Shown here: piece by piece, positions 4,438 to 31,194 of the stretch
How the letters are laid out: each line of letters starts with the position of its first letter
Position numbering within the stretch: the first letter of the stretch is position 1
Source of the DNA: Oculina patagonica
Taxonomy: Eukaryota
Reading direction: 5' to 3'
DNA length: 64,000 nucleotides
Assembly: GCF_052425735.1 (NCBI RefSeq)
Contig: NC_135763.1
Location: 10,788,001 to 10,852,000, forward strand
Notes under the pieces: generated by a model
Told to the model about the DNA's origin: nothing
Database searches by the model: none
Seen by the model: only the letters and a program-made list of their open reading frames with translations
Position numbers and translations under genes: made by a program

Positions 4438-7400
4438 ATGGGTCGACTAGCTGTATTTGCAGCGTTTTTTCTCGTCACCGTACTAGCATCGCATGTCCTT
4501 AAAACGCTGTAAGTCAGGTGTTGCTGTAAATACGTAAAAACCCCGTGTTCTGAGTTGAATTAATTATGCAGCGACTCAACTGATGCATAAATGTCAGACA
4601 ATGATTTCCTTTCATTATTCAGAATTTTGGTCGGGTTTTTCACTCATGTCGTGGATCACGCACCCGGACCATGCAGAATAATAAAAGGTAAGTTAGTTAT
4701 TATATTAGTACGTTTCGATTCTAGGAATCTGGCTTTGCGTGTTCTCAAGGACCATAAGCTACTGGGCTTTTGTCACAGTTGATTGCTTGCATGCACAGTT
4801 GCATGCACATAGAACACGGATGGCTTTTGTTTAATTGAAGGCTTTCAGTGACAACTGTTTTTGTTTCTGCACAATCACTAAAATTTTCGCAGACAGGAAA
4901 TGAAAAACTAAAAAAAACTTCGTGTTAGATAAATATAATACATCTACCCGTTATGGTAATCAAACGCCTAATCAATCTTGCGTTATCGAATTTTTGCGAC
5001 CAGCGAACAAGCACCAGCGCAGTTCGCTGGAGCAACTCTAATGTTGGTGAGGAAAGATTGCTTTGACGCTGACTAGCGATTGCGTTATATACTCCTAAAA
5101 TTCGCGGGCGCTTGTATTGTTCTCGAGCTATATTTGGCATTTAGCACGTGAACAAATGTTCCTGCTCATATGATTTTAATTAAATTAATCCATATTTTGT
5201 GCAGCGAAACATGCGTTCAATAATTCCATATTCCTTATGTGGCGTGTTCGTACGTGCCCGTGTTTTCACGATGTCAACATGTTTTCACATCGCCCATGAG
5301 TTTTCTGAGCGGTCAGTGTAAAACGAAGACTAAAATGCAGATTGAGGGTAAAATGAAGACTGCAGACCGGAAGAAAAATGCAGACAGAGGGTAAAGTAAC
5401 GAAATACGAGTCACAAAGCCTTCCGCCGACTCCAAAGTTCGAAGAAATGTATGTCAGATTACGTTTCGCATGAGCGAACACGTGAATGGACTGGCGGTTT
5501 TAAAATGTTTATATGCATATGCCGACGCAAAATGTGTTCAATTTTTTACTTTTAATACGGACTTGACCTTGTGAGACTTCAAGTCTTCGTCACCAGTAAA
5601 CTGGATGAAACTGAACGGTTAACAGCCCTTTCAGCTGTGCCCTTTCGGAAATCATTTTTTTACGCACACGAACTCATTGAAACTCATGTCATTTGTTTCA
5701 TCGCTCCTTGTGTTGCAGCCGGACGTGTCACGAAATCCTCGATCGTCTGCAGTTCGCAACGCAAGCAAGCAAGTTAACCGCTCTCTATAAACATAAAAGT
5801 GTTGTACCTTTTATTTTTTTAAATAGAGTTTTATTACGACGGTTAGCGAAGCAAAGCCATTATTTATAACTTTACTGCGGAAGCGTTTAATCTGCGCCAG
5901 CTGTTGCGGTGGAGTAATTTGATCGCTGAACGTGACCTTGCTGTGTCGGCATGGTATAAAAGAGAATTATTTTTCTAAATTATCCTTAAACCGTCCAGTT
6001 AAATGAGTTAAATCGGGTTTTTAAACGAATCAAAAAGTTAATTTGATAGCTTTTGATCAAATTATCTATTTTGTATGACATTTATCACCACTTCATTTTC
6101 ATGATAACTCATGCGAAGCGTTGTCTGGCGTACATTTCTTTGAAATTTGGAGCAGCTAGCCGGCAGGGAAAAATGGCTTTGTGACTCATATTTCGTTACT
6201 TTACCCTCGGTCTGTATTTTTCCCCTGGTCTGCAGTCTGTATTTTACACTGACCGGATTGAAAAACAATAATTCACATAAAACATAACTCATTTCTAGAA
6301 TTCACATTCCTGTAGTTTCTTTTATTTTACAACATTTTTAAAAGATAATTCTATACAAAATACACATGGTCGCACTACTTAACGTATCGTTATTACTAGT
6401 TGTATTAATTAAAACATCGGTCAGAACAAAACATGGACTGCGAACTGCGAACTGCGGACTGCGGACTGCGGACTGCGGACTACGGACTACGGACTGCGGA
6501 CTACGGACTGGGTAACAAACACGAACTGAGGTATAAAACGTGGACTAAGGCTAATAATAACCGCTATAAATGCGAACTTTTATCCAGTTATTTCAGAGAT
6601 TGCTAACAGCAACTGTAGGACTTCTTTTGAGATTCAGATCGTTCAGTTTTAGGGGTTTACCCCGTGGCATGCTTTTATGCACCCAAAAATTCAGTCACGC
6701 AAATTTCCATCCGAAAACATGCCCTCCCCTCCCCGTATATCCCCCCCCCCCCCCACAACGTATTTAAGCCCTCCCCAAAAATAAGCCAACCTAAATGCGA
6801 GGTTAGCCCAGGGCGTTTGTTTTGATAGCCCCAGCCAAAAATTAACCTTAAACCTAGAAATTAACTCAAGCCCAAACCCTAAAACTGACTCTATTTCTGG
6901 AAACTAACCGTTGTAAGCTAAAAACTAATCTTAGTATACAGTCTGCATCTGACCGAATGATAACTGAATTAAACTTTCTAAAAAAATTAATCCTGTGTCC
7001 TGTTACTATCTTTCAGTGAATGGTTCCGAGGATCTCACTCTCCTTCCTGATGGACTGGTTTTTGTGTCGTCTGTGAGTGTTTTTCATTATTCGCTGCACC
7101 TTTCAATAGCACGCGAACTCCGTACACTCAACGTTTGCGCTTTTCGCTGCCGAACACACGGGAACCTTTTTGGGGAACAAGGGAACACATGGGATTTTTT
7201 GGGGGGGAGCAAGGGAACATGGACCCCCCTTCGTTTTGGTCCTCTAGGCGCATTTTGTGTGTGTGAACGAAGGTTAAGTCACAATTTAAGCACCGTTAAG
7301 GGTTTTGAGTACAAAATGCAACAAAAGCCTTGTTAGTTCTCCTGTAATTTATGGTTATTAATTATTAGTAATTTATTATTACACCACAAACTGGTGGTCG

Positions 7401-8428
7401 ACAAGGTTAATTAGAGTTCTTGCAACGGTGCCGACTAAGGACCTTATAGACTCTTGGCCAAACACGACAAATTCAGAGTCTCCAACAATGCTATATTTAC
7501 TGCAATATTATATTGAGATTTAGAGCAGTTTTTAATTGAGTGTCGTAAAACCAAAATCAAAGTATCCACTCTGCCCAATCGCAAAGGGCGCAAACAATCC
7601 AGTGAATCAATGAAAACTCGAAGCAAATACATGTAGTCGGCACGAAGGGCGGGAAAACGAGCGAACGAGTCACGAGTGGATTTGGTTTTACTTCTGATCG
7701 GCTGAGAAAGTGGCGCGAGTTTTTTAAACCAATCACTAAGCGTAGTATAGTAGTGCAAAACCAAAGCAAGCGCGAATTACTTTCGGCACTCAAGTGAAAA
7801 CTGCTCTTTTAATTGTGAGTTTTTCTTTCTGCTTATCAAACAGGGGCTTCGCTACAAACTTGGCATGTCGTACGACCCAGTGCTTGATACACGAGACAGT
7901 AAACTGATGACATTCGACATGAACAAACCCAGTCAAGATCCAGTTGAATTAACACTGAAGAACTTTAATCGCACGGGATTCAACCCGCACGGGATCAGTG
8001 TGTATCGGGATCCATCCTCGGGTACGGTGTCGCTGTTTGTGGTGAATCACCGACCAGACGCTCAAGCCATTGAAATATTCGACTTCGAGCGAGACACGCA
8101 TTCATTAATTCATCGCCGCTCCGTGGTCGACGAGTTGATTTGGAGTCCAAATAACCTACACGCAGTGGGTAAGTAACAATGTATTTTTGATACTCCTTTT
8201 AATGCGAACGACCGACCCATTCAACCACCTTCCCACCCAACCTTCCCACAAACCCTACTCCCATCCCGCATACCCACCATGCCACCCTTGCCTAGTTCCC
8301 ATCCACTAGCTTTCCATTCTCAACCCACGTCAGTCACATACTAACTCACATCGGACCTTTACATTGCTTTAGCTAATTACAGAAAATGTAAATGTTCAGA
8401 ATGTATGTAATGCTGTGTCAATAAAGAT

Positions 8429-8465
<37 letters not shown>

Positions 8466-11400
8466 ACATCGGACCAATCGCTCGTGAAATTTTGCTGGGA
8501 CTGATTTGTTATTTCAAACTTTCAGCTGTGTAAGCACGCTCTTAAAGTCTTGCATAGCACTGCATAACCAAAGTTTTCCTGCCTGTAAAACGTGTTTCGT
8601 TGACAAATTGTTGAATAATAACAAAATCATCCTGCTCAATCTTGCGGAATATCGCTTGATTTTAGCTGACTCGGCCAACGGCCTTGTCGGCTACTTAGTA
8701 TCAGGTGATGTTCCTCGCGATTTCGCACGATAATTGTTTTAAAGTATCATGTACGCGCGCGATGGCTCAGCTAGACTTACCAAAAATAAGACGAAGGACT
8801 TTATTGAAAATCTATTACTCAGCCAATCAGATTTAAAAATGTGCATTAGTAGAACTCTACTTAAATCTGAAGTTCTCTAATGTTTTTTTTTTTCATGCCA
8901 ACAAACTGCATTTGCGGCACTGATAAAACTACCAATACCTGTACCTTTTTTTATTGATAGACCCACTGGGCTATGTTCACGCACCCCCCCCCCCTCACCC
9001 CCCTGGCTTAACCCTGGTTCTCGATGTATTGCAAAAAATGCATAATGTCACTTTCAATGGTTTTCTTTTTTCTCTTTCTCGCAGGTCCTGATAGTTTCTA
9101 CGTCACAAACGACAATTACTTCCATTATGACAGCACCCTTCTGAGGGTTCTCCACAGTTTTTTTCTACATCAATGGCACCAGGACAACATTGTGTTTTAT
9201 GACGGATTTAAGGCCATTGAAGCGATAGGGGGGATTGATACCAATGGTATTACCATGGATAAAGACGAAAGGTTGGAGTTCCTCGATTATGTAGTCATTT
9301 TTCCTCGGTTATGTAGTCAAAGACACGATGTGGAGGCAGCGTGGCCGAGTGGTTAGAGCGCCGGACTTGAAATCTGGAGGTCCCCGGTTCAAGTTCCGTT
9401 CTGACCACTATCTGGATTTGTTCTCGGTCGTCCCGAGTTCAAATCCTCGGTCATGCTTGTAAATAGCCAACTGGTCTGTCTCCTGCCAGTTGGGATTTTT
9501 AATCATGTTATGTTTATTTAATATATTATATTTGTTTCATATACACGGCCCCACAAGCTTCTATCTTTAAACACAAACCGTGTATAAATAAAGTTGCTTT
9601 AGCTTTTTACCTTAAATTGGACCTGTCTAATTCTAGCCCAGTTGGATGTTGTATACAGTTAGGCTACTTTTAGCTCGAACTCGGAAGTTACAGGATAGAG
9701 TACGCATTTTCAAGGTCGTGCAAATGGAAAAGAGTTTTTGGCAGTAGCATCCGGTTTCCATAGTAATAGGCGTGCTTGTATTTCTCAGTTCCCCCCCCCC
9801 CCCCCCCCACATTCCAGGGTTTTGTCAGATTGCCAACGCTGCCTATTTATATTTTTCGATGTTTATAAGCAATGTGAGAGCAAAATGTCAGACATAACAC
9901 AGCCAAGTCTCGAACTAGAGACCGAAAGGCTAACAGTAATGTCACCGCGTCACAATGAACGTTTAATAATAGCTTTTTTTAATAACTTTAATAACTTTTA
10001 GTTTTGCTATGTTAATTTAATTCCGTTGCTATTTATTCAGACTCTCTCACTTGGTAAGTTTAATAACTTAGGTTATTTGTCGGTTAAAGGGATTTTGGTC
10101 TAAACTATTCTGAAATTAGTGTTAGGCAACTGAACCCTAAATAAACATTTTCTATAAACATTTAAAGGAATATATAACCTGAATTTGCGGATAGAAATCA
10201 AGCTACGGCTATAAATATCCATATTTCGAAGACGCGCGGAAACAACTTGAAAACGTTAGCCTAACTTTTTCAAGTTGCAATACGTTTCCATCCGAGCCAT
10301 CTGCAACCAAAGATGCTCGTTAACAGTTATAGTGCTCTAATATAACATATTTTTGTAAAAATGGACTGTTATTGTTAGGTTTCCTGCGACACAAATATAA
10401 TATTGGCGGCTCAAATATCTGGTTAAATCCGTGACACAGTTCCTTTGAAGAGTCAGTTCAATTTTCAGCCTGTCATCACATGCACTAGTTTTACGATAGG
10501 CAATCTGTACCTTGTTAACGGAGTGTTATTTCTGTCGGGGGAGTAAGTGCCAGTTTTGGCCAATCTTCGTTGAAGCACTCGAAAAATTCCCGAATTACTT
10601 CATCCAATCAAAAACTAGCGCGAGCGCTCACGAGTTCTCCGAAAGCCGTCGCGCGTATTTCGCGCGTAAAAATACGTCATGTTGTTAAGCAGCTTCCGTG
10701 ACGAAAACCGCGGGCTCAGTCACTTCTCGGAGAAGTGATGTCGCCATTAACTGGCACTTGTTCCCTCGACTGATTTCAGGCACAGGCGAATTCACATTCC
10801 TTACTGCTCGTTTTGTCTGATTCCTCACAGGTTTGTTTTTGCATCCGCTGGTCTTAACCTTGGTGTCGCAGTCTACAGACGTCTTAAGGACAACACGTTA
10901 GAAGCGTCACAGGTTGTTCAATATATACTGTTTTTGCCGACCGTTCTAGTAACAATATATATCCTGTCTCCCGTCTCCGGGGTGGGTGGGGGTCCTCGCT
11001 GAAGTGGACTAAACGGGAGGTTCTGGTCGCCCAAAAGGGGTACCTTTTTCAGTCTGTAGCAGTATAAAAGAGTAGAGGGAAATGGCATTTAGGTATTTAA
11101 AAGGGCCTTTGAAAATAACTTACACAGACGCACCGAAGTGTAAGGGGTTTATCAACTTAAAAATTAAAAGAAACAAGTGGTCGTATCCCTTCGGTAGGTA
11201 TTTGGAAAGGATACGATTTTCTATCGAAGGTTTATGAAAGGGTATATAACCATTTCTGTCAAAAAAGTTCTTGACATGGTACAGTTTTTGCCCTCTGGAG
11301 AAGCTCCCGTGTAAAACATTTTTTAGGAGAGATCTATTTTTTTCTCAAGCTGAAAGTGTGATTAGTTTAGCTGGAGAAATTTCTAGTAGAACATGCTTTT

Positions 11401-11801
11401 CACGATCGATGGCTCGCTCAGCAAGCATATTTACTTCCTTTCTAAATCTTACCAAGTTTCCTTTCTTGTTTAAACAGATGATCAAAGTTGGTTCTTTTGT
11501 TGACAACATCAACGTTGATCCTGTGACGGGAAATCTCTGGGTAGCGGGAATCCCGAGACCCCTGGATATAACAGCTCACTCACAAAATGTCAGTCATCTT
11601 AGTCCCTCGCAAGTCCTCTCGGTGCAGCTGGGACAGCCGTCCACATCCGGGATAGCTTTCCCTGATTACAAGGTTCGCGAAGTGTACATGAACGATGGGC
11701 GGGAACTGACGGGTGCCACGTCTGCGATTGTTTATAAGGATCGTCTGCTTATTGGCTCTTTATACAGTAACATGCTGTATTGTGAGGTGAAGTTCTACTG
11801 A
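4438..11801 (+). CDS. PON: Paraoxonase/arylesterase (PON family lactonase) paralogue A, 7 exons, 369 aa
   Basis: Exons 4438-4508, 4623-4687, 7017-7072, 7844-8168, 9085-9271, 10831-10912, 11478-11801; all GT-AG, phases consistent, 1110 nt. Hydrophobic N-terminus; motifs GPC, NGSED, FNPHGIS, VVNH, SPNN, FYVTND, NGI, VDNINVDP, LYCEV match the PON six-bladed propeller. Confidence 0.95.
6437..6510. repeat. Heptamer tandem repeat (GCGGACT/ACGGACT)n
   Basis: About 10 visible units in PON-A intron 2. Confidence 0.9.
7521..7807. mobile_element. MITE (AGAGCAGTTTT...AAAACTGCTCT family) in PON-A intron 3
   Basis: Terminal inverted repeats. The same family lies at 52334-52616, and partial copies sit at the equivalent position in PON-B (~15430-15700) and PON-C (~27461-27610). 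Confidence 0.85.
8358..8460 (+). mobile_element. 5'-truncated retro-insertion (AATAAA + poly-A) with 15-bp target-site duplication
   Basis: AACTCACATCGGACC at 8343-8357 and 8461-8475 flanks ~75 nt plus a ~28-nt poly-A tail preceded by AATAAA. Confidence 0.9.
9332..9600 (+). mobile_element. tRNA-derived SINE in PON-A intron 5
   Basis: A-box TGGCCGAGTGG, B-box GGTTCAAGTTCC, tRNA-like head with no proper acceptor stem, followed by a non-tRNA body and an AT-rich tail; absent at the equivalent position of PON-B. Confidence 0.85.
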
Positions 11802-13639
11802 TCCGCTGACAAACAAGATATGTAAACGTTATACTGTACTGTTGTAAGTTGTGTGAGTACTTGAATCACATATTGCTATAGCTTTAAGCACCTCCGTGAA
11901 TGATCTTATACCCAGTTGTAGTCAATATCTGTCTTCAAGAGCCTACAGTTAATTCTGGAAATCAGCGCAACCTACAGACTATTCACTATTCTGCTAGCAG
12001 ATAAGTGAATTATCTGTAGGTTGCGCGCGCAATGCATGATTTTCAAAGGAATTCCAAGTTCACGTTCCAAGTTCCAAGTTCAAGTTTTAAGTTCAGGTGT
12101 GGTGACCACACGTAAACTTTAAGTTGCAAACAGTAAAAACATGGCTCGTCGATTCGCTTCGACGCATTGTGAGCTATTGAGATGTGTGTTAAGATTTTGA
12201 CTGTTCTCCTTTTTATAGTTGTGGAAATCGTGTTATTTGTCAAAGAAATAAACGTTTGAACGGCATGCACGAAAGCATCGTAAATGTTGTTGTTTTTGTG
12301 TCTGCGAAAGCGTGAGCCCCATAGACGTAATGCAAAAATGGTTGTCATCCATTTGTCTTGTTTGGTCGAGTTTCTAAAAACGCTGATGCTGACACTTGAA
12401 AATAATGGAATAATATGCTACAATTAGAAGTCTTAATGTTTTTGATTAAAAGCCCGCAGATTTGTGACTCATTCAACTTTGAGAAATTTGTTTGGAAAAA
12501 GCCACCCTGGTCTGCCTAGCCGCATTTTCATGCTTTGGCCATGCTCTGAATATAAACAGATTTAATAAATATAGACATATTAAATTAAATGAGTGAAAAG
12601 TGTTTGCATACATATACGAGGATTGAATTGTATTAATATGAAAGAATATTACATAAATATAAATACTGAATTGAGTGAATATAAAATATTAAATAAATAT
12701 TAAATTGAATGAATATGAAAATCATAAATATGATAAATTGAATAAATATAAAAATATTGAATATTGCTACAGTCGGCTTGCCATATTGGGGTCTATGCAG
12801 CGCCTTGTCACCGATTTGTCCCACGTAAAAATCACCTCGCACGCAGAGACGCAACGCGCGGATGAAAAGAATCAGTTCGCTTGCGTTTGCGTGTCCACAG
12901 ACTTGCCCAACCCAGAGAGAGAGAAAGAGAGGAGGGGAGGGGGTTGGGCTACTTGTAGATTAACGGTATGCTGAAAGTTGCGAGCCATTTAAGGCAGCTT
13001 ATTTATCGTGTACCTGAATTGCCAAAATTAAAGTCGTATCATGATGTGCTGGTAGTTATCAAAAAATGGGGGGGGGACCGGCGGTACCACCGAAAGCTAA
13101 AGTCGTAAGTGGTTTAACAGGTTATAATGTTGCTATGGTAACCACTAATGTCAAGGAAATGGTCACAACTTGTTGACCAATGATTGGGCATTTGTTTTCA
13201 TAGTATTACTCTTATAGCAGTTGACAAAGAGTTGTAGTACAGACCCATGAAATAAAAAGGTCTGGAAAATACTGAAAACCGTTATCAGTCAACAAGGCTT
13301 AATTTCCATCGAAGGCACATAAAAAGGTTACCTTTACTTTCGGCAATGGTCTATAAATGGGTAAGGGTTAAGGGTCTGCGCCTTGGGCCCGAAAGAAACC
13401 TTCCGTATAAAACGTTTTTGTGTAGCCCCCACCCCCCCCCCCCCCCAGATCTGCGACTTGGAGAGCCACTGAGAATTTCTCCGCGCACCTATTGTCTTTT
13501 TGCTCTTAAAAAAATTGGCCTGTTCGGAGTTTAGAAGTCAGTCAGTAAACCTTGCCAGGGTCTGCAGTATTCATTTTCCGTACTCTGATATAATTTCGCC
13601 ATTGTCCAGATCCAAGGTAAATTCCGTATCGAGCCAAAG

Positions 13640-13716
13640 TATCCCATATCCCGTATCCCGAATCCCGTATACCATATCCCATATCCCCGTATCCCATATC
13701 CCGTATCCCGTATCCC
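13640..13716. repeat. Heptamer tandem repeat (ATCCCGT/ATCCCAT)n
   Basis: About 10 degenerate units. Confidence 0.85.
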
Positions 13717-13850
13717 AGTCAGCTGGAGCTGTAAATCCCTCCCTTGAACGGGTATGCTGGTAAATCGCAGGGCTATCTTCAGGACAGTATCTGTGAGGAT
13801 AAATTGTCTTTCCCAGACCAAGAACACAACGTAAGTATCCCTTAAGCATA

Positions 13851-14348
13851 CCTTATTCTTACTCATTTTCGTGAGTACTAATTTTCGCGATTTTCGCCGA
13901 AATTTCAAAGTAATTGCGAAATTTAATACGCGCGAAAAATGTATTGCGCGAAATTTAAACACGCGAAAATTAATACCATATTATTATCGAAACCATAAAA
14001 AGTTTAAATGTTTGGAACTGCAACTCTCAACCTTAAAAAAGACTTTTCCGTCTTGTTTCAACTAGCCGGCACCGTTCCTCTGATTACTGTTTTCTTCAGC
14101 TTGTATCTTGGCCAAAACGTCTTTAGTACAGTCACCAAAGTTTTCGTTTGCAGGCTCCTTTTAGTTACATTGAGCCAGATATTTGTATATATCCAGTAGT
14201 TTCTTAGTCTTTGACGACTGCTCCATAAAACACTGAGAAAATCGCGAAATTTAATACATTTTTGCCTTATGTTTTCTTGCAATCGCGAAAATTAATACTC
14301 GCGAAATTTCGCGAAATTAAGTACGCGCGAAAATTAGTAAGAATAAAG
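13851..14348. mobile_element. MITE with TA target duplication (Tc1/mariner-like)
   Basis: TA|CCTTATTCTTACT...AGTAAGAATAAAG|TA, with sub-terminal TTTCGCGA/TCGCGAAA repeats; ends ~300 bp upstream of the PON-B ATG. Confidence 0.8.
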
Positions 14349-14642
14349 TACGTAAAATTTACACTTCCAAAAAGTACAGCACTTTCCGGAACAAAGCAAG
14401 GCCGATTTGTACAAAACTTGTCATAAATTTTCCTATTGTGAAACTCTTCTGGGCACGAAATAAAAGATTGTTGTGTTGTTGTTGAAATAACAATTCCATA
14501 AATTCTTGCCGTGTGCGTAATTCTGTTGTTAATTAATGAGATGCAAACCAGCATGAGTTGTTTTTCCGCAATCCCACCCATAAGCTCTTTTGTTCCCGGC
14601 ATATTGCTATTCTGCAGATTGGAATCAATCCACATTGTACTC

Positions 14643-17600
14643 ATGGGTCGACTAGCTGTATTTGCGGCGTTTTTTCTCGTCACCGTACTGGCATCGCATG
14701 TCCTTAAAACGCTGTAAGTCAAGTGCTGTTATAAATACAAAAAACGCGTTCTGAGTTGTAATAATGATGCTGCGACTAACCGGATGCGTATTGTTAGATT
14801 TTGATTCCTTTCATTTTTCAGAATTTTGGTCGGGTTTTTCACTCATGTCGTGGATCACGCTCCCGGACCATGCAAAATAATAAAAGGTAAGTTAGTTACC
14901 GGTATTAGTATCAATTAGACAGTACGTTTTAATTCAAAATCTGGCTTTACGTGTCCTTCATCAGAACCTCAAGGGATTGGGCTTGGTCACAGTTGATTGC
15001 TTACATCTGCATACACGATCGGGAAAGTGGGGGGTGGGGGGGGGGGGGGGTGGGGGTGCGTGTTGATTGTCTACATTTAAAAATGTCACGTGTCGCTGTT
15101 TAAGCTTACCGTCATAAGCTTATAACCAATTTAAGTCTACAGTCTTCATTTTTCATTTCTTACCAAATAACAACTGAATTTCTAACATCCCGTGTCTTGT
15201 TACTATCTTTCAGTGAATGGTTCCGAGGATTTCGCTCTCCTTCCTGGTGGACTGGTTTTTGTGTCGTCGGTAAGTGTTTCATTCCATAAAGAAAAATAAT
15301 GAAGGTAGTTTGCATCAGTAGAAACCTAGAGCTATGCGTAAGCGTAATAGTCTAGTTTTGCTGAAAATCATTAAACTGGTGTACTGAGTTTAGTAGAGTT
15401 GTTATAAATTTGGATCACAAATTAAAATCGTCGGGCAGACTTTTTCAAACTCAGCTCTCGTATCGTCACAAAGGACGCAAACAATTCACTGAACCAAACA
15501 ATCAAAACTCAAAGTAGATACACGTAGCCGGCACGTAGCGCGGGAAAATATGCACGAACGAGTCACGACTGGATTTGGTTTTACTTCTGATTGGCTGAGA
15601 AAGTGGTACGAGCTTTTTCACACAATCACTAAGCCTAATGATGCAAAGCCAAAGCAAATGCGACTTACTTTCGTCACGACATCCAAATGAAAACCTCTCT
15701 ATTTACTGTGGGGTTTCCCTTTTGGTTATCAAACAGGGGCTTCGCTACAAGATTGGCATGTGGTACGACCCAGTGCTTGACACACGAGACAGTAAAGTGA
15801 TGACATTCGACTTGAACAAGCCCAGTCAAGATCCAGTTGAATTATCACTGAAGAACTTTAATCGCACGGGATTCAACCCGCACGGGATCAGTGTTTATCG
15901 GGATCCATCCTCGGGTACGGTGTCGCTGTTTGTGGTGAATCACCGACCAGACGCTCAAGCCATTGAAATATTCGACTTCGAGCGAGACACTCATTCATTA
16001 ATTCATCGCCGCTCCGTGGTCGACGAGTTGATTTGGAGTCCAAATGACTTACACGCAGTAGGTAAGTAAGGCAAAGTAAAAAAAAATATGTTTCATGTCC
16101 CCGCCCGCCTCATTTTTGGGGGCCGCTTCTCTTTTTTTTTTAATAATTGTTATTGGGAAAGTTGGAGCAACAAAACCAACAGGCGTTACTCCTCAATTAA
16201 GTACAGATAAAATTTTGTAAGATATGGCTTTTGTCTGCGTTTTGATACGAAATCAGAGCAAAATTTTTAAGGCCTCGGCGCACTAGGTCCGTACTGGATA
16301 GGTCAGGATTGATTTTGCAAGTTCGCTTCTGGAAAACTTGAAGATGGAGGAAATAACAAATAACAAAAAAAAGCACCCGTTCACACTCTTTTTTACAAAA
16401 ATTTGGACAAGAAACATTTTTTTCTTTTACTTGGCCTAACAATGCATTTTTGATACTCCTTTGACTTCAACTGACCGACCTACTCAACCATCTACTTTAC
16501 CACAGCTTCACCCAGGCTAACCCGTCCACCATCCTCCCATATATGAACATATCAGTTCATTTAACAATTTTGACGCAGACTCGTTCCCAGTCGCTCCCTT
16601 GGCGGTTTTGACTAGAACGCATTGCATCAAGGGAAGGCCGAACGAAAATCGGGTAGCAGTGAATTTGTTTAGCTTTGTCGTAAAATTGAATTGTCAATTA
16701 TGTATTTAGAACTAAACTTATTCTTCCACTTGGAATATCGTGGCTGCGCGCAATGGCTCAATAGTTGAATTCTTAATAAAATTTGATAGTTTCTAATTTA
16801 TTAATTTATGACCAAAACTACCAATATATCTTGATTTAATATTGATAGACCTACTGGACTATGTTCAGGCAATCCCCCCCCCCCCCCCCCCCCTCTCCCC
16901 CGGCTGGACTCCATATTTTGTAAAAATACATGATATCACTTTTTAGTGATCCAAATTATTATTATTATTGTTTTCTTTTCCTCGCAGGTCCTAACAGTTT
17001 CTACGTCACAAACGACAAATACTTTCACTTTGACAGCACCTTTCTGAACTTTCTTTACCTTTTTATTCTGCACAACTGGCTCTATACAAACATTGTGTTT
17101 TATGACGGATCTAAGGCCATTGAAGCGACAGGAAGAGTTCATCCTAATGGTATTACCATGGATAAAGACGAAAGGTTGGAGTTCCTCGATTATATAGCGA
17201 TAACCAAATTTGTGACCAGTTGGATGTCGTATGTAGTTTAATTCTGCCTTTAGCTAAAACTCTGAAGCTATAAGATAAAGAGTTACCAAGGTCGACGTGC
17301 TGGGAGGTAGCCAAAGCAGTGGCACAGAACAGGCAGTGTTGGACAGAAAACGTGACGGCCTTATGCGCCTACTGGCGCGACGAGAATTGACGATGATGAA
17401 GGTCGACGTGCAAACGGAAGAAAGTTTATGCCGTCGCGTCGGTAGCTAGTAATAAGCGTGTTAGGCCGTGTTCATACTAAGTGCACGAGCACTGGTACCT
17501 GAGCGCCAGCAGAAAATAGCGTCGTGTTCACACAAAGAAAACCAAAGTACCAAAGTACCATTAAGTGCCCGAGTACAAGGTCCGCGACTTTGTACCGTAC

Positions 17601-19402
17601 CCGAACTATGGCGTGGGCACTTGAAAAAATAATATGTTCACATTAGTGCCCAGCGAGAATCGTGCTCGGGCATTGTGCCCAAGCACCAAGTGTGAATACA
17701 ACGTAAGTCTATTTCAGGTTACTCACATTCCTGATTTCTCGTTTTGCTGCCTCACAGGTTTGTTTTTGCGTCCAATGGTCTTGGTCTTGGTGTCTCAGTC
17801 TTCAGACGTGTTAAGGACAACACGTTAGAGGTGTCACAGGTTGTTAAGTCTAAACCTTTAAGTAACTATTTCATTAGGAACTACAATGTACATGGCTACA
17901 ACACTCGAAGGAAGGCTGACCTCCATCTACCTAAACCCAAGCTTAGCCTTGGCAAGCGTACTTTTAGATTTTCTGGCACAGCCCTTTTTAATTCACTACC
18001 TTTAAAAATCCAACAAGCTGTATCACTCTCCTCTTTTAAAAATCTTGTCAAAGCCCACTTTATTCATAGCCCTTATTTACGATATTTAATTCGTAATTCG
18101 TTTTAGTTTTTAAAATCTTTTTATATAACTATTTCAATTACTAAACATAAGCTTTTAACTCTATTTTTATAACTATTTTAAACAATTAGATATTTTATAT
18201 TTTTAGAAATTGTATTTAGCAGGGCCCCTCCGGAGACCAGCCACTGTGCTGAATGGGCCACCTTGCATAAAAAAAGTTTTTCCTTACCTTACCTAACCTT
18301 ATATCAGTGTGCAATACTGTTCTTAACAGTTTATTAATCTGTCAGTCCTGCCTCCCGGGGTGGGTGGGTGTACTCGCTAAACTGGACTAAACAAAACATT
18401 CCGGCCTCCCGAAAGTGGTACCTTTTTCAATCAGTGTAGGCATATAAATCGGAGAACGGAAACCAGTTATAGGTATTTAAAAAAGCCTCTGAAAACATCA
18501 CATGTAACGCCACCGAAGTATTTTGAGGGGTTTGTAAAACTGAAAAGTTTAAAGAAAAAAGTTTTAGTATCCCTTTTGTAGTCACGTGAAAGGGGGACCA
18601 TATTCTATCAAAGGTACATGAAAGCGTACAACCTTAATTTTCTGTTAAAATAGTAAATAAAAGGGTAAAAGTCTGGCCCTCCGGGAGGAGCTTCTCGTGT
18701 AAAATCCCCCCAATTTCTCTATCGTGGGGTTGCGACGCAAAACTAACTTATGGCGTTGAGGTTGTCAGGGAAAAGCCAGGTTGCTAGCTCAGGGTGGATC
18801 CAACGCCGTGATGTATAATTCTAGTTTAACAATAATTCCTCGCATTTTCTCGTTCATTAGATTGCGTTAGAAAGAAGGTACTTACGTTATGCTTACCTTT
18901 AGACCATAGGGAGAGAGAGCCATTTTTCTCCCCAAGCTTAAGGTGTGTTTAGTTCAGCTCCATCGTTTGAGCCACATGAAGCTCCCAGAAGACCATGGTC
19001 TTCACGATGGCTCGTTCAGTAAGCATAGTAACTTGCTTACCAAACTGATCTAACTAAGTTTTTTTCTTGTGTAAACAGGTGATTAAAGTTGGTTCTTTAG
19101 TTGACAACATCAATGCCGACCCTGTGACGGGAAATCTTTGGATAGCAGGAATCCCTAGAGCCTTGGATATAACCGCTCACTCACAAGATCTCAGTCATCT
19201 TAGTCCCTCTCAAGTCCTCACGGTGCAGCTGGGAAAGCCGTCTACATCCGGCATAGCTTTCCCTGATTACAAGGTTCGCGAGGTGCACAAGAACGATGGG
19301 CGGGAACTAACGGGTGCCACGTCTGCGATTGTTTATAAGGATCGCCTGCTTATTGGCTCTGCATTCAGTAACATGCTGTATTGTGAGGTGCAGTTCTACT
19401 GA
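14643..19402 (+). CDS. PON: Paraoxonase/arylesterase paralogue B, 7 exons, 369 aa
   Basis: Exons 14643-14713, 14822-14886, 15214-15269, 15737-16061, 16988-17174, 17758-17839, 19079-19402; same exon lengths as paralogue A, GT-AG, no stops. Confidence 0.95.
17301..17398 (+). mobile_element. 5'-truncated LINE 3' end (RTE-like, GAT-repeat tail) with 13-bp TSD
   Basis: AAGGTCGACGTGC at 17288-17300 and 17399-17411; the empty site is visible in PON-A (caaggtcgtgcaaatgg, ~9711). Confidence 0.8.
17464..17704. mobile_element. Small MITE (Harbinger-like termini GGCCGTGTTCA...TGTGAATAC)
   Basis: Imperfect terminal inverted repeats with internal AAGTGCCCGAG-type repeats. Confidence 0.55.
17855..18300 (+). 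mobile_element. CR1/L2-type LINE 3' fragment in PON-B intron 6
   Basis: Translates HGYNTRRKADLHLPKPKLSLGKRTFRFSGTALFNSLP..SFK (typical LINE ORF2 C-terminus), then an AT-rich 3' UTR and a CCTTA-repeat tail. Confidence 0.85.
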
Positions 19403-20028: not shown

Positions 20029-20169
20029 TAGGGCGCTTTCCATTTGTCAGAACTGGCCGGCCTGACCGGTATATTCGAGAACGGAATTCCGTTGTTAGTC
20101 AGATTCGTCCTGTCAAATCAGTCAAGACAGGTATAATATACATTGTTGTGGTGGATTTGTGGGAAAATC

Positions 20170-23293: not shown

Positions 23294-26200
23294 TCAGTAG
23301 AACTTCACCTCACAATACAGCATGTTGCTGAATACAGAGCCAATAAGCAGACGATCCTTATAAACAATCGCAGACGTGGCACCCGACAGTTCCCGCCCAT
23401 CGTTCTTGTACACCTCGCGAACCTTGTAATCAGGGAAAGCTATCCCGGATGTAAACGACTTTCCCAGCTGCACCGAGAGGACTTGAGAGGGACTGGGATG
23501 ATTAAGATTTTGCGAGTGGGCGGTGTGATCCAAGGCTCTAGTGATTCCCGCTACCCAAAGATTTCCTGTCACAGGATCAACATTAATGTTGTCAACAATA
23601 GAACCAACTTTAATCATCTGTTTAAGAAAGAAAAAACTCAGTCAGTAAGTTTTCGCGCGGCGCTTAATGGTTAGGCGACGACTGGAAACACGAGTGCAAC
23701 AGTCCCAGACCTCCACGCGCACCGCGCCCCAACCAGTAGGCGACGTGACTGGACTGAGTAAAAAACTGACTGGTAAAATAAAATAATCATGATAATAAAA
23801 CAACAATATTGCACACTAAGGTTTAAACAACAATTGCTAAATGAATTCACCTGTGATGCCTCTAACGTGTTGTCCTTACGGCGTCTGTAAACTGCGACAC
23901 TAAGGTCATGCAAAGCGGACGCAAAAACAAACCTATAAGGAATCAAAAAGAAAAATCAGAAATGCGAGTTTACGTGTGCTTGGGATATTATTCCGTTTAG
24001 TACAAATTGTCTATATTTCAAAACCAAGTGCTGTAAATAACAGGCTGTAGAACTGAACTGTTTAATTAAATGCTAAATAATAACCTATAAAATATTAACC
24101 TTACCAGGTGCGAGCGTCTGGATAAAAAGCAACTTAGCGCAAGCCATTTTCGAAAAATTCGTAGCAAATTTAAAAGTTCATTATGCAGTTGACGCGATGA
24201 CCTTATAGGTAGACTTTTGGTTTATGGATCAAGTGGTCTAGATCGAGAGCAAGCCGTGTTGTGTTATTGGCCAAGACATTTTGCTCTCAAAGTGCTTCTT
24301 TCCAGTGAGAGGAATAAATGGGCACGGTCGAACTGATAGGGCTACCTGGCAGAGCTCTGAGGTGGTGGTGGTGGCGGGGGGGGGGGGGGGGGGGGAGTAA
24401 CCTACAATGGACAAGCACCATATCAAAGGCGAGACACACATTCATTAATTCATCGCCGTTCCGTGGTTGACGAGTTAATTTGGAGTCCAAATGACCTACA
24501 CGCGGTGGGTAAGTACTTGAGCAGCAATACTCCTGGCCACTTCTCACTACGGAAACCAGAAGTCACTGACGCGCCGGCACAAACTCTCTTCCGTACTTAC
24601 GACCTTAAGGAACTCTGTCAGGGATTTTAACAGATTTTTGAACAGCCAAAATTTATATTTGTGTCGTAGGAAACCTAAACATAATGGTCCATGTTTTAAA
24701 AAATATGCTATATTAGAGCACTGAAACTGTTTACAAGCAGTTTTGGCTGCGGATGACTTAGGATGAAAATGGATTGCAACTTGAAAAATTAGAGCTGACC
24801 TTTTCAAAGCTGATTTTGCGTGTCATTAAAAATCTATATTTATGGCCGAAGTTTGATTATAATCTTCAGATTAAGGCTGTATCCTCCATTAGATGTTCAA
24901 AGATAATGGTTTTTTATTGGTCAAGTTGCCTACAACTAATTTCGGAACAGTTTAGACCAAAAATTTGCAAAGCTCTCGTGACGTAGCTCCTTTAAAAGTC
25001 TTTATAGCACAGCTAAGGCGCCCCCCCCCCGGGGGGGGGTACTCCCATAAATTTCGAATAGGGGTGTGCCGCCAAGGTTCTTAAACCCTGACCCTATTTA
25101 AGGGTAAAGAAAGCGAAAATTGATACCCTTTTAAAGGCCCAAAACCGAAAAATGACACCCTATTCAAGGGGAGGAGAAGCGTTCCATGACGACCCAAATA
25201 ACGGCTTACCGCGCACGGCAACACACAAATCTCTATCAAATCGCTTTACTAATAACTGAACAGTAAATTCAATTTTAAAATACCTTTTTTGGTTTAGCTG
25301 GGCGTTTATTTTAACTTATAGAATTTAGGTACCCTATCTAAGGATCACACCGGGAACTCATTGCCAAAAGGAGCAAAAATGATACCCTATTTAAGGACCG
25401 AGAACCTCAAAAACCATACCCTATCGGGCGACACATACCTATATAGGCCACATATGGGAGTACCCCCCCCCGGGAGGCGCCCGTTCTGATTAGTTAATTT
25501 AGCGTCTACTATTTGTGAATTCTTCTCTGTTGCATCAGAGTAACCTGCCTGAAGCTATAAGTTACAATCTGTAATGCTACGTACGCTATACAGCACATAC
25601 AAATTGGGGTATTATTGGACTAGTCAAACTGAACGCTTTCGGCCGGTTTTGGGACCCTGTAAATAACTGCATAGCCGACGAACTCCAACCTTTCGTCTTT
25701 ATCCATGGCAATACCATTGGGATGAACTCCTCTTATGGCTTCGATGGCTTTAAATCCGTCGTAAAACACGATGTTAGTATGGAGCCAGTTGTACAGAAAA
25801 AATCTAGAGACAACGTTCAGAAAGGAGCTGTAAAAGTGAAAGTAATTGTCATTTGTGACGTAGAAACTAGCAGGCCCTGCAAGAAAATAGAATAACAGTA
25901 AAAGTGAGTCCGCTATGCGAACATGTGTGGACTTTCATTTGATTAAAAGTTGACATTATGAATTAATCAATGAGTTACTAAATTAATAAATAACCAGACA
26001 TTTGATTCGTTTTAATATGCGAATCAAAAATGCTCAAGCCGCACAGAAAAACAAACACTGCGGAAAGTGAGACAAAAGTGTGAAAAAGAGAAACGTGACC
26101 TACCACCGCAGTTGTTCAGCTCATTAGATATGCAGATTTTAGCCGTCGCGATTGCTATTTCACTTTTCATCTACGCCACCGCTGCCTTTGAAGTTGTTCC

Positions 26201-29200
26201 TTGATGTATATTTTCCAGCCACCACACGCTCTTCGAAAGATGTGTCAAAAAAGGCTTCTAGACTCAAGAATAAAGTGCGACTTACTCGATACTGATCGAA
26301 TTTCTGGGTTTACTGCCTTGGCTGCCCATCTCAGACATCTCACCGAAACTTCGGATTCTCCGATCACTGTCGAAAACTTCCGAAAGCACTAACCCGAGTT
26401 ATCACGGAAAGTGACCCCCCAATCGGAAAAAACTGCATGACAACAATGTGTAGACTTTAAAGTCCACACAAAAAACGAAAGAATTTTTAGGATCACTGAA
26501 AGGTAATGTAATGTTTTTTTTTTTGTTACAACAGGATAATGTCGCGGACCCAGGCCCATCCGAGGGGTGCATGTATATAGCCCAGTGCGTCTGTCAATAC
26601 CAAAACTAAGGTATTCATAGGGCCAATAACTAACATCAACCAATCAGATTACCCCATTGCCGGTCCAATAATTTCTAAGTATTGAAAGGAGTATTCCCAA
26701 ATGATCACGCCCGTAATTTGTGCATTGTAATGACTTAGACGGTAAAAAATAAACTTGACACGCATGGAAACCCTCTTGTACTTTTAATTGGTTTGTAAAA
26801 TTACGTTTGGATGGTGATTTGGGTCTGTGTGTTGGTAGGTGACTGACAAGGGTTAGAATGGAAAGTTGGTGGATGGGAACTGGGCAGGGGTGGCATAATG
26901 AGTATGCGGGATTGGGGGGGGGGGGGGGTAGGTTGAATGGGCCTGTGGGTGAGAGGGTGGTTTAGGCTGCGTAGATCCGTGGGTCCCTATGTGCCACGAG
27001 GCATGAGCAGGATAGGTGAGATCCGTGGGTATGTGGGTGTATGAATGGGTTGTTCGTTCATTGTAAGAAGAGTATCACAAGTAAGTACTTACCCACTGCG
27101 TGCAGGTCATTTGGACTCCAAATTAACTCGTCAACCACGGAACGGCGATGAATTAATGAATGCGTGTCTCGCTCGAAATCGAATATTTCAATGGCTTGAG
27201 CGTCTGGTCGGTGATTCACCACAAACAGGGACACCGTACCCGAGGATGGATCCCGATACACACTGATCCCGTGCGGGTTGAATCCCGTGCGATTGAAGTT
27301 CTTCAGTGTTAATTCAACTGGATCTTGGCTGGGTTTGTTCAAGTCGAGTGTCATCAGTTTACTGTCCCGTGTGTCAAGCACTGGGTCGTACCACATGCCA
27401 ATTTTGTAGCGAACCCCCTGTTTGATAAACATTAAGAAAAACTCTCAATATAAAATAAATAGAGCGGTTTTCACTTGAGTGTCGAATGTCATTTGCGTTT
27501 GCTTTGGTTTTGCACTGCTACGCTTAGTGATTGGTTTAAACAACTTGCGACACTTTTTCAGTCAGTCAAAAGTAAAACAAAAATCATTTGTTACTCGTTC
27601 GCACACCTTTCTCCTTGCTTAGGCTATGTTTATACGGGACGGGTTCCAAACGGATCCGGTCCTAAAATCGGGCCGGATAGGGCTTCTGTTTACATGGAAC
27701 CGTTTGGAACTGATCCAGGTGTTTACACGAGACCGTTATGGAACCGGTCCGTAACGGATCCAATACTGGACCTGCAAAACAACAGGCCCAGTTTTGGATC
27801 CGTTCTGGACCGTTTCCAGAACGATCCGGATCCCGTGTAAACAGAAGCCCTATCCGGCCCGATTTTCGGACCGGATCCGTTTGGAACCGGTCCCGTGACA
27901 GAAGGGAGAGGAAATTATAGAGGAGCTTACAGGGAGGTTCATGTTCCCTTGCTACCCCCCAAAAATCCCTTGTGTTTCCTTGTTCCCAAAAACGTTTTTC
28001 CCAATTTTGTGATCCCTAGTTGTTCCCTAAAATATCAGAAACAAGCTTTTGTTGCCGTGTTCCTTTTATTTCCTTATTTCCAATTATTTTATGGCCATGT
28101 TCTCTTGTTCCCTGAAACTCCTAAAGACTCAGCCCGACTTCTACAATTCAAAACCTCGTGCACGCGAACTCGTGATAAAACTCCTTTTTAATTAATATAG
28201 AATAATTCTAACAAAACTAGACCATTACGTTTAAAATAAAGGTTTCCACTGAGACAAACTACATTCATGATAAAACAAACACTTACAGATGATACAAAAA
28301 CCAGTCCATCAGGAAGGAGAGCGAGATCCTCGGAACCATTCACTGAAAGATAATAACAGGACACGGGATGTTAGAAAGTTAACCTGAGAACAACGCACCT
28401 TAGCTGAAACTAAGGACGTTATCCGCATGGTTCGTTTTAAATTGTAGGATTTTTTAATTTTTTTATTGTGGTATCAGTCAATTAAGGAATTTTTATTTTT
28501 TATATATTTATATCATAGTTAATAAAAAAATTCAGTAGTTAGCATTTTACATTTTTTATTTTAATTTATCTTGATCATATTTTTTTCACGTAATAAAGTA
28601 TCTATGTATCTAACATCTAATCTATCTAATTCAGTTATCGATTTCCTCTGGAGTTCCGTCATACATTTACTGTATAATTTAACCATCGGTAACTCGAAGC
28701 AGTTTTCGTTTCCCTTCAGGGCATTTCCTATATAATTCAAAGTTATTCCTGAATAATTTTACTCTCGGTAATTCGAACCATGCCTGACACTAATACGTGA
28801 CAAGTCAAAACCAACAGTCACTGTGGTCCAAAACATAGAATTCATTTTGAAGCAGCCGTGTAATGTTTGTTCTTTTTTGCATTAAACAAAACGTGTCAGT
28901 CCAGCTTCTTTGGTTTAGGGTGCGTTTAACTACAATGATTGTATCTTTATAAAGCGTTGCTGCTTAAAAAATGTCATTAAATCTCTTGCGTCCCTTGAAG
29001 TGCAGTGTGCACGGCACCGATCTATATAGTAGTTTAGAAATGTATAGTTTCATTTTTACTCGCCTTCTCTATACTGTAATGGAATTTGATAACTGAAACC
29101 TTTTTCAATTTCCAATCACAAATCACAAGCCTATTTTCCTTCAAGTCACGAATCATGTATATTTTTTAGACCATTTCACGAGTCAGGTATTCACATCTAC

Positions 29201-31194
29201 ATTATCATAGGTGGAGAAGCACAAGGGGAGGGGGGACAGGGGGGCTGAGCACCCCCCCCCCCCTAAGTAAGTTTGCGCAGCATAAAATTGGTTTCATTCT
29301 CGTGATCTTTTTACAAATTGTATCATCAGGATCGTGCTTGGCGAAATAATATGGTGTAGGTCTTTTAACGAAACTCCTCTCCCAAAAACGCTACTAGGAG
29401 AGGTCATCAAGGTGTAAGGATTGTATTTGCGGCGACTTCCGTGGTGGTGGGTGGCACTTGGCTTGGTGCACGAAGAGCCCCCCACGTTTCAAAATGCTCC
29501 ATCGCCTCTGATTATTGATGAAGATGAGTTTTAAGAACTTACCTTCCAGTGGCCTAGTAGCAAGACTCTTTGATTTAACAAACCCATAAATCGACCCATA
29601 GTAAGAGGGTACCCTCACTACTAACCGATGGTCGAGCCGAGAGAACGTGTCCTCCATTCATGGTCAATCTTTGGCTTTATGAATCGTACGTTTGTCCATT
29701 TTGGTTTACTACCGTAAAGTAGGTAATTTCATTTTCGGTTTTCACGAATGATTTTTGTCAGAATCACGGATCACAGTCTTAAAAATAAGCAGATCACGCG
29801 TTATGTTAGGGTGCGTTTCTTTGGGAAAATCCAAAATTGGATCATTGATCTCAGATCACACGGATACTTTGCTCCCAAAGAAACGAAGAATCCGAAAACG
29901 GATTTTTTGCCATGACAACCCCGTAAACACATTACACACAGAACATAAAATATCAGCACAAATTTATTTTTCGTCGAATGTATGCTAGCTAAAATAATTT
30001 AAGCATACAAAATCTTTGGAAAGATTTCCGCACAGGACCCTACATTAATTTATATGTATGCAACTATTTCATACCATCACTATACATAAACAGCAATCAT
30101 GAAAAGAACGAATCAGTCAGAAAATTGTATGCATAATTAATGTAGGGTCCTGTGCGGAAATCTTGCCAAATCTTTTACAAAAACCACACGTCGAAGTAGA
30201 TCTTCTTTAGCGTTAAGCAGAATGTGCCGAGAAAGCATCTAAGAGCGAAGAATGATTGCGAAATGATCAGTGCAAATTTCACTCGTGACAATTTCAAAAG
30301 GATACAACTTCCGTAGGCACACAGTCGCTGTTCTAGAAAACCTGTATCCCGTTTAAAATGATACTACATACCTATCTGAAGCTACCGTTTCCTTTCATCG
30401 TGAAATATTTTTGTATTTTGATCGAAATAACCGCCTAAAACTTTCCGTATGGCAGTGTTTACAAAGAGCGAACCTGTATTTTCACAGCAAAGACCGCTGG
30501 GCCAAGGTACTTTTTTCGAATCCTTTCCCAAAGAAACGCACGGATCGTGAATCCTAAAAATCCGGATTCAGATATGATCTGATGTATCCACTCGAAGTGT
30601 GGATTCTTCAGATCATTGATCCAAGATTAATCCATTTTCGGATATAGTTAAAGAAACGCAAAATCCGTTTTTGGATCAAGAATCCGGATTTGGATTTTTC
30701 CCAAAGAAACGCACCCTTTACATGCCTTTAGACTGGCAATTAACGGATCACGGCTAGACTTGGGGGCGGAGAGAGAGAGACCCTGGAAACGAGGTTGAGA
30801 CTTAAGCAGTATTCACATGTCACGTTCTATTTTTTGCTTAAATCACGCGTCACGCAAAACCCTTTACCACCCTGCTTGAGGTCCTTGTAAACACGAAAAA
30901 CCAAATTTCTTGAATCGAAACGTACTTTAAAGTAACTTACCTTTTATTATTCTGCATGGTCCGGGAGAGTGATCGACGACATGAGTGAAAAACCCAGCCA
31001 AAATTCTGAAAAATGAAAGGGAATCATTGTCCGACATTTATCATTTGTGCATCAACTCAGAACGCGATGTTTTTCGTATTTACATCACGTTTACATGTAC
31101 ATGTATAGTATCACTTGACTTACAGTGTTTTAAGGACATGCGATGCTAGTACGGTGACGAGAAAAAACGCCGCAAATACAGCTAGGCGACCCAT
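23294..31194 (-). CDS. PON: Paraoxonase/arylesterase paralogue C, 7 exons, 369 aa (inverted relative to A and B)
   Basis: Exons (minus) 31194-31124, 31005-30941, 28342-28287, 27417-27093, 25876-25690, 23932-23851, 23617-23294; same exon lengths as A/B, GT-AG, no stops. Confidence 0.95.
24429..24518 (+). pseudogene. 90-bp inverted copy of the PON-C exon 4 3' end plus splice donor, inserted in a decayed SINE in PON-C intron 5
   Basis: 87/90 identical to the reverse complement of 27083-27172; carries PON-C-diagnostic bases (cgTtccgtggtTgacgagttAatt). Confidence 0.95.
24609..24991. mobile_element. Kolobok-like MITE (TTAA-flanked, purine-start TIRs)
   Basis: TTAA|GGAACTCTGTCA...TGACGTAGCTCCT|TTAA; imperfect TIRs. 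Confidence 0.55.
25024..25474. mobile_element. MITE with CCCGGGGGGGGGTACTCCCATA termini
   Basis: Clear TIRs, flanked by an AGGCGCCC duplication, with internal ACCCTATTTAAGG repeats; decayed relatives at ~10976-11310 and ~18354-18710. Confidence 0.85.
27622..27898. mobile_element. Palindromic MITE (GGAACCGGTCC/GGATCCG repeats) in PON-C intron 3
   Basis: ACGGGACGGGTTCCAAACGGATCCGGTCC is mirrored by GGACCGGATCCGTTTGGAACCGGTCCCGT. Confidence 0.75.
29809..30716. mobile_element. Harbinger-type non-autonomous element in PON-C intron 2
   Basis: TIR GGGTGCGTTTCTTTGGGAAAA / TTTTCCCAAAGAAACGCACCC flanked by TTA/TTT; internal hairpin ~30016-30170. Confidence 0.8.

Follow-up and report, generated by a model that had tools for sequence, protein, structure and literature searches.

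Here, a 64,000-nt stretch of the Oculina patagonica genome (NCBI RefSeq assembly GCF_052425735.1, contig NC_135763.1, positions 10,788,001 to 10,852,000 of the forward strand; hereafter, the window) was analyzed, and three intact genes of the paraoxonase (PON)/arylesterase family, A (+), B (+), and C (−), were found at window positions 4438 to 31194. PONs are calcium-dependent six-bladed beta-propeller hydrolases, and the native activity of the members studied is lactone hydrolysis. The best overall explanation, to which we give a probability of about 0.75, is that A, B, and C are real PON paralogs, two of them transcribed, that diverged at the active-site face under a history of relaxed constraint. 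In this explanation, a tandem triplication with one copy inverted would have occurred in the lineage leading to O. patagonica, at a locus that holds only one PON in other corals. After duplication, protein evolution would have become approximately twofold faster, with net purifying selection retained, and the differences would have settled on the active-site face, namely, in helix H2 and the loop encoded by exon 5, at the equivalents of PON1 F222, L240, and L267, in helix H3, and at the equivalents of V346 and F347. Gene conversion probably kept the 5' half alike. Most likely, substrate range or lipid-interface properties diverged as constraint was relaxed on a pocket rim that is intrinsically plastic, and a few adaptive changes may be included.

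Gene models were built from canonical GT-AG junctions around conserved peptide anchors, and six-frame open reading frames (ORFs) over 4 to 32 kb gave three exon sets. Each gene consists of seven exons, with all junctions GT-AG and an uninterrupted coding sequence (CDS) of 1,110 nt for 369 amino acids, and the exon lengths (71/65/56/325/187/82/324 nt) are the same in the three copies. Gene A lies at 4438..11801 (+), with exons at 4438-4508, 4623-4687, 7017-7072, 7844-8168, 9085-9271, 10831-10912, and 11478-11801. Gene B lies at 14643..19402 (+), with exons at 14643-14713, 14822-14886, 15214-15269, 15737-16061, 16988-17174, 17758-17839, and 19079-19402. Gene C, which is oriented opposite to A and B, lies at 23294..31194 (−), with exons at 31194-31124, 31005-30941, 28342-28287, 27417-27093, 25876-25690, 23932-23851, and 23617-23294. 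The start codons of A (4438) and C (31194, − strand) coincide with the limits set by a first-pass annotation of this DNA, and its claim of three intact 369-residue genes was borne out. The translation of C was 100% identical over 369 amino acids to the database entry P0156, "serum paraoxonase/arylesterase 1-like [Oculina patagonica]," which was reached via a full-length soft-coral homolog (P0012), as the exon 4 query alone gave mostly fragments. In the protein homolog searches, no database protein entry was returned for A or B, in contrast to C.

Sequence and structure searches indicated that A, B, and C are members of the PON/arylesterase family. Using phmmer, exons 4 and 7 of A matched PON1 structures (rabbit/human, 1v04 and others) with E values of 6e-13 and 8e-12. 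The Pfam Arylesterase model (PF01731) matched C (P0156) at 51.1 bits, against a gathering cutoff of 21.3, and matched exon 5 of A alone at 29 bits (E=1.3e-6). The exon 4 and exon 7 pieces gave no Pfam match because the Arylesterase model spans the central 86 residues only. When exon 5 alone was searched against the PDB by phmmer, no PON1 match was obtained; therefore, H2 was mapped from the MAFFT alignment of the family together with the fold. The structure was modeled for C, to which A and B align without gaps. The AlphaFold model, based on a 50-sequence alignment, had a predicted local distance difference test score (pLDDT) of 94.6 and a predicted template modeling score (pTM) of 0.92. The ten best Foldseek matches in the PDB were all PON1 entries, with template modeling (TM) scores of 0.80 to 0.92 (0.81 to 0.92 for the best, 9r0q/1v04) and root mean square deviations of 2.2 to 2.8 Å, and the modeled six-bladed beta-propeller superposes on PON1. 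The modeled helices comprise an N-terminal helix at residues 2 to 26, a short H2 at residues 190 to 198 (pLDDT of 78 to 87, the least confident part), and H3 at residues 290 to 298.

Residue correspondences were taken from a MAFFT alignment with mammalian PON1. The catalytic calcium ligands E53, N168, N224, D269, and N270 correspond to coral E50, N167, N226, D271, and N272, which are invariant in A, B, and C and also in the 50 aligned family members. D54, D183, and T332 (PON1 numbering) are likewise invariant in the three copies. The H115/H134 dyad, equivalent to coral H113/H133, is present in A, B, C, and eight coral ortholog sequences, and conservation of each of the two residues across the 50 aligned family sequences is at least 90%. 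The cysteine pair of PON1 (C42-C353) corresponds to C41/C364 in all three copies, where a disulfide is predicted. Thus, the invariance of the calcium ligands, the dyad, and the terminal cysteine pair, as asserted in the first-pass annotation, was confirmed in the residue table of this alignment. At PON1 D169, a structural-calcium ligand that it had not listed, A has N and the other two copies have D; among the coral orthologs, N is commoner than D at this position. Because no copy has lost a ligand of the catalytic calcium, either histidine of the dyad, the cysteines of the disulfide, or the hydrophobic helix at the N terminus, A, B, and C are most likely active membrane-anchored lactonases or esterases.

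Transcript contigs and reads from four runs were mapped on window positions 11400 to 17399. For gene A, a 1,386-nt contig (run X2, record 9) showed 0 mismatches over exon 7 and the 3' untranslated region (3'UTR). Its upstream part was aligned to the homologous exons of B, because exons 1 to 6 of A lie outside the mapped stretch; this gave 2 to 28 mismatches per exon and joints exactly at the predicted borders, and the 75 unplaced letters stand for exon 6. The exact match in exon 7 and the 3'UTR, together with the joints at the exon borders, thus identified a full-length spliced A mRNA with seven exons, in which the weak GTTGGA donor of exon 5 was used. The 3'UTR of A covers at least 11802..12041 (+), as contigs of runs X1, X2, and X4 span 11474 to 12041. 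About 12 sense raw polyA reads (X23) were located on 11800 to 12400 at the 3' end of A, which is too few for an expression level. At 12046 (+), contigs of two runs depart from the reference with the same loose sequence, pointing to an indel there or to a 3'UTR of gene A with an alternative structure. For gene B, contigs of run X4 contained B-specific exons 4 and 5 with 4 mismatches in 190 nt, over a region where A and B differ by 18%, and carried the joint from 16060 to 16987. A and B are transcribed. In introns 2 and 3 of B (15000 to 15800), the contig word depth reached thousands in three putative RNA runs, which is probably due to transcribed repeat or transposon sequence.

A, B, and C formed one clade excluding Desmophyllum and the other coral orthologs, with supports of 93/97 in the protein tree and 100% in the codon tree, and A and B were grouped at 99% in the codon tree. 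At the corresponding site, Pocillopora and Acropora each have one PON, flanked by a G-protein-coupled receptor gene and a beta-lactamase/BTRD1 gene, and in Desmophyllum one PON was seen within 10 kb on either side. In the window, a beta-lactamase/BTRD1 gene follows the three PONs at approximately 37.6 to 42.9 kb. From this shared neighbor, it follows that the ancestral position is where the array formed, C having been inserted inverted. The clade and the single PON at the syntenic site in Pocillopora and Acropora support the earlier description of the expansion as lineage specific.

Among the three copies, 69 of the 369 positions vary. The variable sites are unevenly distributed over exons 1 to 7 (0/24, 3/22, 3/18, 8/109, 25/62, 9/27, and 21/107; chi-square p=1e-6), accounting for 40% of exon 5 versus 8% of exons 1 to 4 (Fisher p=5e-8). 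Near-identical exons 1 to 4 and a sharply divergent exon 5 are what the first-pass annotation had described. Exon 5 is located at 9085..9271 in A (+), where it encodes the blade-3 B strand, the H2 region, and the F222/N224 loop; at 16988..17174 in B (+), as given by the gene model and transcript contigs; and at 25690..25876 in C (−), as given by the gene model. The three 20-residue helix strings previously quoted for this exon were found verbatim at residues 187 to 206, and the alignment to PON1, proposed there as a check, reproduced every PON1 correspondence listed. In the order A/B/C, the residues are L/L/V at the L69 equivalent, N/K/N at H184, D/H/H at F222, SAGLN/SNGLG/SALHD at PON1 residues 238 to 242, I/I/H at I291, and LY/AF/VF at V346-F347.

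Two enrichment tests, defined independently of the inspection of A, B, and C, were used to locate the differences. Twelve substrate-interaction residues of PON1 are listed in PMC3105050; six of them vary among the copies (L69, F222, L240, L267, V346, and F347), compared with 63 of 357 positions elsewhere (one-sided Fisher p=0.013), and none of the six calcium-coordination residues varies. In the second test, loops were assigned to the active-site face or the opposite face from the strand order of the C model (DSSP string) and the ligands at the inner-strand starts, so that the pocket mapping consists of the published residue list plus top and bottom loop classes. On the active-site-face loops, 32 of 103 positions are variable versus 37 of 266 elsewhere (odds ratio [OR] 2.8, p=2e-4). 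This excess stems from the B-C loops of blades 3 to 6 (H2, the L240 loop, H3, and 346/347), and 15 of the 24 residues in the H2 stretch at 182 to 205 vary. The D-A loops are almost invariant (2 of 32 sites), and the propeller core and N-terminal anchor are almost unchanged among the copies. The variable sites are thus enriched at the pocket and not away from it, in agreement with the claim that the differences concentrate at substrate-pocket positions.

Such an enrichment would also be expected under a second explanation, in which positive selection reshaped the pocket and the copies now prefer different lactones, for example, bacterial acyl-homoserine lactones (AHLs) that differ in chain length, as a host quorum-quenching set. 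Comparison with single orthologs bears on this explanation in both directions. Of the 69 variable sites, as many as 59 are variable also in six ortholog sequences, each from a separate source among the other corals (OR 5.3, p=3e-7), which counts against selection acting on the Oculina copies in particular, and the same excess on the active-site face is seen in the orthologs (OR 2.3). Intrinsic variability of the family therefore accounts for most of the pattern. After conditioning on ortholog-variable sites, a face-loop excess was still obtained (OR 2.1, p=0.012). Ten changes occurred at ortholog-invariant sites, and three of these, at or next to the pocket, speak for the selective explanation: L66V in C (PON1 L69), N183K in B (H184), and P225T in A, which adjoins N224. 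In its favor as well, all three copies differ from one another at eight sites, among them the L267 and V346 equivalents.

Rates of codon change were estimated at several levels. By the Nei-Gojobori method, the ratio of nonsynonymous to synonymous divergence (dN/dS) between the copies was 0.27 to 0.43 overall and 0.09 to 0.22 outside the variable clusters. The per-exon calculation, suggested in the first-pass annotation, gave 0.31 to 0.56 for exon 5, above the 0.11 to 0.28 of exons 1 to 4, yet below 1. No exon or region had a dN/dS significantly above 1 in the by-exon and by-region Nei-Gojobori analyses. A dN/dS for a region of post hoc "top clusters" was biased by ascertainment and was not used. 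For codon models, our own GY94-F3x4 code was applied to nine sequences, comprising A, B, C, and six ortholog CDS (three assembled by splicing genomic loci of identical exon structure and three taken from transcript contigs), a set with low power for the branch-site test. The one-ratio omega was 0.25. A two-ratio model gave an omega of 0.41 on the post-duplication branches versus 0.22 in the background (likelihood ratio test [LRT] 11.9, p=5.5e-4), and this result held when the set was reduced to six taxa (p=0.0015); the omegas of single branches were 0.41 for A, 0.66 for B, 0.22 for the AB stem, and 0.33 for C. In the comparison of M1a with M2a (LRT 8.2, p=0.017), the selected class comprised about 0.6% of sites, coral 206 and 242, the latter being the L240 equivalent, which is hypervariable in all corals.

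The doubling of omega after duplication and the choice of the L240 equivalent by M2a are both in keeping with adaptive change. However, the regional omegas were all below 1 or not significant, and the M2a signal is family wide, involves two sites only, and is treated as weak because the deep branches are saturated at synonymous sites. In the literature, a paper on jellyfish quorum quenching (PMC6328592) cites PONs as AHL lactonases of eukaryotes, and a heat-stress study (PMC8484447) referred to a coral PON as potentially quenching quorum sensing, both of which lend the idea some plausibility; substrate preference and bacterial response in Oculina would be drawn by analogy. Taken together with the absence of any branch-site signal, as described below, an adaptive specificity panel is unlikely. 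Its most specific form, a substrate-partitioned lactonase set used against the AHL signals of mucus and pathogen bacteria, is quite unlikely; different preferences for acyl chain or lactone ring would then stem from changes specific to C (V66 and H293), B (K183 and A357), and A (D224 and a His-rich H2). That the coral copies hydrolyze AHLs and quench quorum sensing is, at this point, purely conjectural. As for the selective "tuning" proposed in the first-pass annotation, the rise of omega after duplication fits it, but the branch-site result and the values of dN/dS, all below 1, do not.

Several observations weigh against the explanation preferred here. In branch-site model A with the post-duplication branches as the foreground, omega2 converged to 1 (LRT 0), and the dN/dS of H2 (0.53 to 0.61) was not different from 1 (p of 0.3 to 0.5), so that simple relaxation of redundant copies fits the data equally well. 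The PON1-type residues H285 and H184 near the catalytic calcium are not kept, being I and N/K/N, respectively; nearly all coral orthologs also have Ile at the H285 equivalent. The H2 alignment to PON1 is gapped and coincides with the least confident part of the model, which makes the K192 and M196 equivalences approximate. Activity, calcium dependence, and membrane anchoring of cnidarian PONs are deduced from conservation. Expression of C is weakly indicated by its automatic annotation and by a small, unverified word share of 0.12 to 0.15 in putative RNA runs, which equals its exon fraction and is uninformative alone. Finally, the shared-derived nucleotide states conflict (AB 16, AC 9, and BC 7), and such a reticulate history weakens the tree-based tests.

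The same conflict points to how the copies may have evolved. A block of B+C shared-derived states lies inside the H2 codons. Synonymous divergence (dS) was lower in exons 1 to 4 than in exons 5 to 7 (A-B p=0.009, A-C p=0.02), and in exon 5, where it was 0.33 to 0.55, it was higher than in the rest (p of 0.008 to 0.08). The N-terminal 40 residues contain 2 variable sites among the copies, compared with 26 among the orthologs. These patterns suggest that gene conversion homogenized the 5' half or that conversion was excluded from exon 5. The contrast between near-identical exons 1 to 4 and a divergent exon 5 would therefore be partly an effect of history, and the duplication may be older than the whole-gene dS suggests. 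The dS among the copies (0.17 to 0.25) is about a third of that to Desmophyllum (0.63 to 0.69), in line with the "young" expansion claimed previously; this age is relative only, and conversion may mask it.

In a third explanation, what the exon 5 differences adjust is not the choice of substrate but the interface with membrane or lipid. According to Harel et al. (2004), helices H1 and H2 of PON1 reportedly bind high-density lipoprotein (HDL) and form a hydrophobic docking surface for HDL or membrane. The most divergent stretch of the coral copies is H2 itself, and its character differs among them: the H2 segment of A is more polar (Kyte-Doolittle mean of −0.38, versus 0.76 in B and 0.48 in C) and His-rich, with 3 His, and those of B and C have 7 aromatic residues each. 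H1 and its linker are nearly identical among the copies, with 2 of 40 sites variable. The equivalents of buried pocket-wall residues (L69, F222, L240, L267, V346, and F347) differ too, however, and these are not interface residues. An effect confined to the interface is very unlikely, and divergence of the pocket rim under relaxed constraint remains the preferred reading.

The possibility that the copies are haplotypes of one gene, which the first-pass annotation had itself raised, was also examined. The A, B, and C proteins are 86 to 87% identical pairwise, differing at 47 to 50 of 369 positions. In blastn comparisons of the three gene regions, the exons aligned at 79 to 94% and the introns were mostly unalignable; the length of intron 2, for instance, is approximately 2.3, 0.3, and 2.6 kb in A, B, and C, respectively. 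All three genes lie in one large contig at approximately 10.8 Mb. A search of the same genome with exon 4 found only A, B, C, an 87-nt relic, and one unplaced contig, and at E<=0.001 this query revealed no more divergent PON elsewhere in the genome. The unplaced contig (C556; L006, 4,452 bp) repeats part of gene A, the one feature in favor of haplotypes. It contains exons 3 to 5 of an A-like sequence, 96 to 99% identical in the exons, and differs from A by 8 exonic nucleotides, a single residue (T53A), and approximately 1.7 kb of extra intron 4 sequence. From these values, it is an allele of A that looks like an unpurged haplotig, and it illustrates the haplotype divergence of this genome. An assembly artifact, in which the copies would be collapsed or misjoined haplotypes, is effectively refuted by the 13% protein difference, the dS, the unalignable introns of severalfold different length, the inversion of C, the location in a single contig, the A-specific and B-specific transcripts, and the far closer true allele of A; the copies are paralogs.

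Other features of the window were recorded. Within intron 5 of C, an inverted 87-nt relic (24429..24515, +) is a copy of the 3' end of exon 4. It was 92 to 94% identical by blastn, in reverse orientation, to the exon 4 ends of A, B, and contig C556, and its own-genome protein match spans residues 82 to 108 of exon 4; it is probably debris of the inverted duplication that placed C. The beta-lactamase/BTRD1 gene (37596..42874, +), which served as the synteny anchor and is outside the PON family, was recognized by PF00144 and PF17660 on ORF pieces; it contains introns, and its BTRD1 repeats (PF17660) are polyglycine-hydrolase-like. A polyprenyl synthetase (PF00348) gene is present as exon pieces at 49052 to 55805 (+). 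A 739-amino-acid ORF at 56188 to 58407 (−), with a reverse transcriptase (RT) and a weak GIY-YIG match, has the architecture of a Penelope-like retroelement, and an ORF at 216 to 1538 (−) was judged by eye to be RT-like, of the long interspersed nuclear element type. Two identical 140-amino-acid ORFs, at 60109 to 60531 (−) and 62288 to 62710 (+), are inverted and form a large inverted repeat.

As the evidence stands, this is an ordinary family expansion of genes that bear an automatic name only. Nevertheless, PON genes are known to have been gained and lost repeatedly in animals, and the Oculina array adds a clean, well-delimited cnidarian case. If the copies have distinct lactone preferences, they would constitute a natural three-point experiment on specificity at H2, the L240 loop, H3, and 346/347, as well as a candidate for host-side interference with bacterial signaling in coral. 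A substrate-partitioned set, if true, would be an animal-encoded multienzyme quorum-quenching system that evolved by recent duplication.

Compared with the single-copy coral PONs of Desmophyllum pertusum (P0158), Pocillopora damicornis (P0266), and Acropora digitifera (P0269), the Oculina genes have the same seven exons with the same lengths, except that exon 5 of the orthologs is 184 or 187 nt, and the protein identity is 65 to 83%. The neighboring gene in Pocillopora and Acropora is also the same. The difference is one gene at the locus versus three, as judged from the 10 kb inspected on either side.

The likeness to mammalian PON1, PON2, and PON3 (PDB 1V04 and 9R0Q) extends to the Arylesterase domain, the six-bladed propeller (TM of 0.8 to 0.9), the five catalytic calcium ligands, the H115/H134 dyad, the C42-C353 pair, the retained N-terminal hydrophobic helix, and the top helices H2 and H3. 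In mammals, too, three genes form a tandem array (PMC9937041). In contrast, sequence identity to the coral copies is approximately 31 to 35%, the seven coral exons are unlike the mammalian arrangement, and the equivalents of H285 and H184 are Ile and Asn or Lys. The coral proteins also have extra H2 residues and an insertion of 9 to 11 residues before the last blade, and the coral triplication is independent and much more recent, with one copy inverted.

No paper on the Oculina PON genes was found in a literature search. As reported previously, tandem duplication and loss of PONs have been frequent across Metazoa (PMC9937041). The main text of that study (Genome Biol Evol 2023) names Cnidaria among the PON-bearing phyla and never uses the word "coral." It describes a PON3/PON4 expansion in the brushtail possum, in which positively selected sites (PAML) cluster around the active site. 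The possum and Oculina expansions are alike as recent tandem PON duplications with changes clustered around the catalytic site. They differ in that positive selection was found in the possum, whereas the branch-site test was negative in the coral, whose variable sites are mostly variable between species. The Oculina array, in which no positive selection was detected, is a further case of the tandem PON expansions with near-active-site changes that have already been published.

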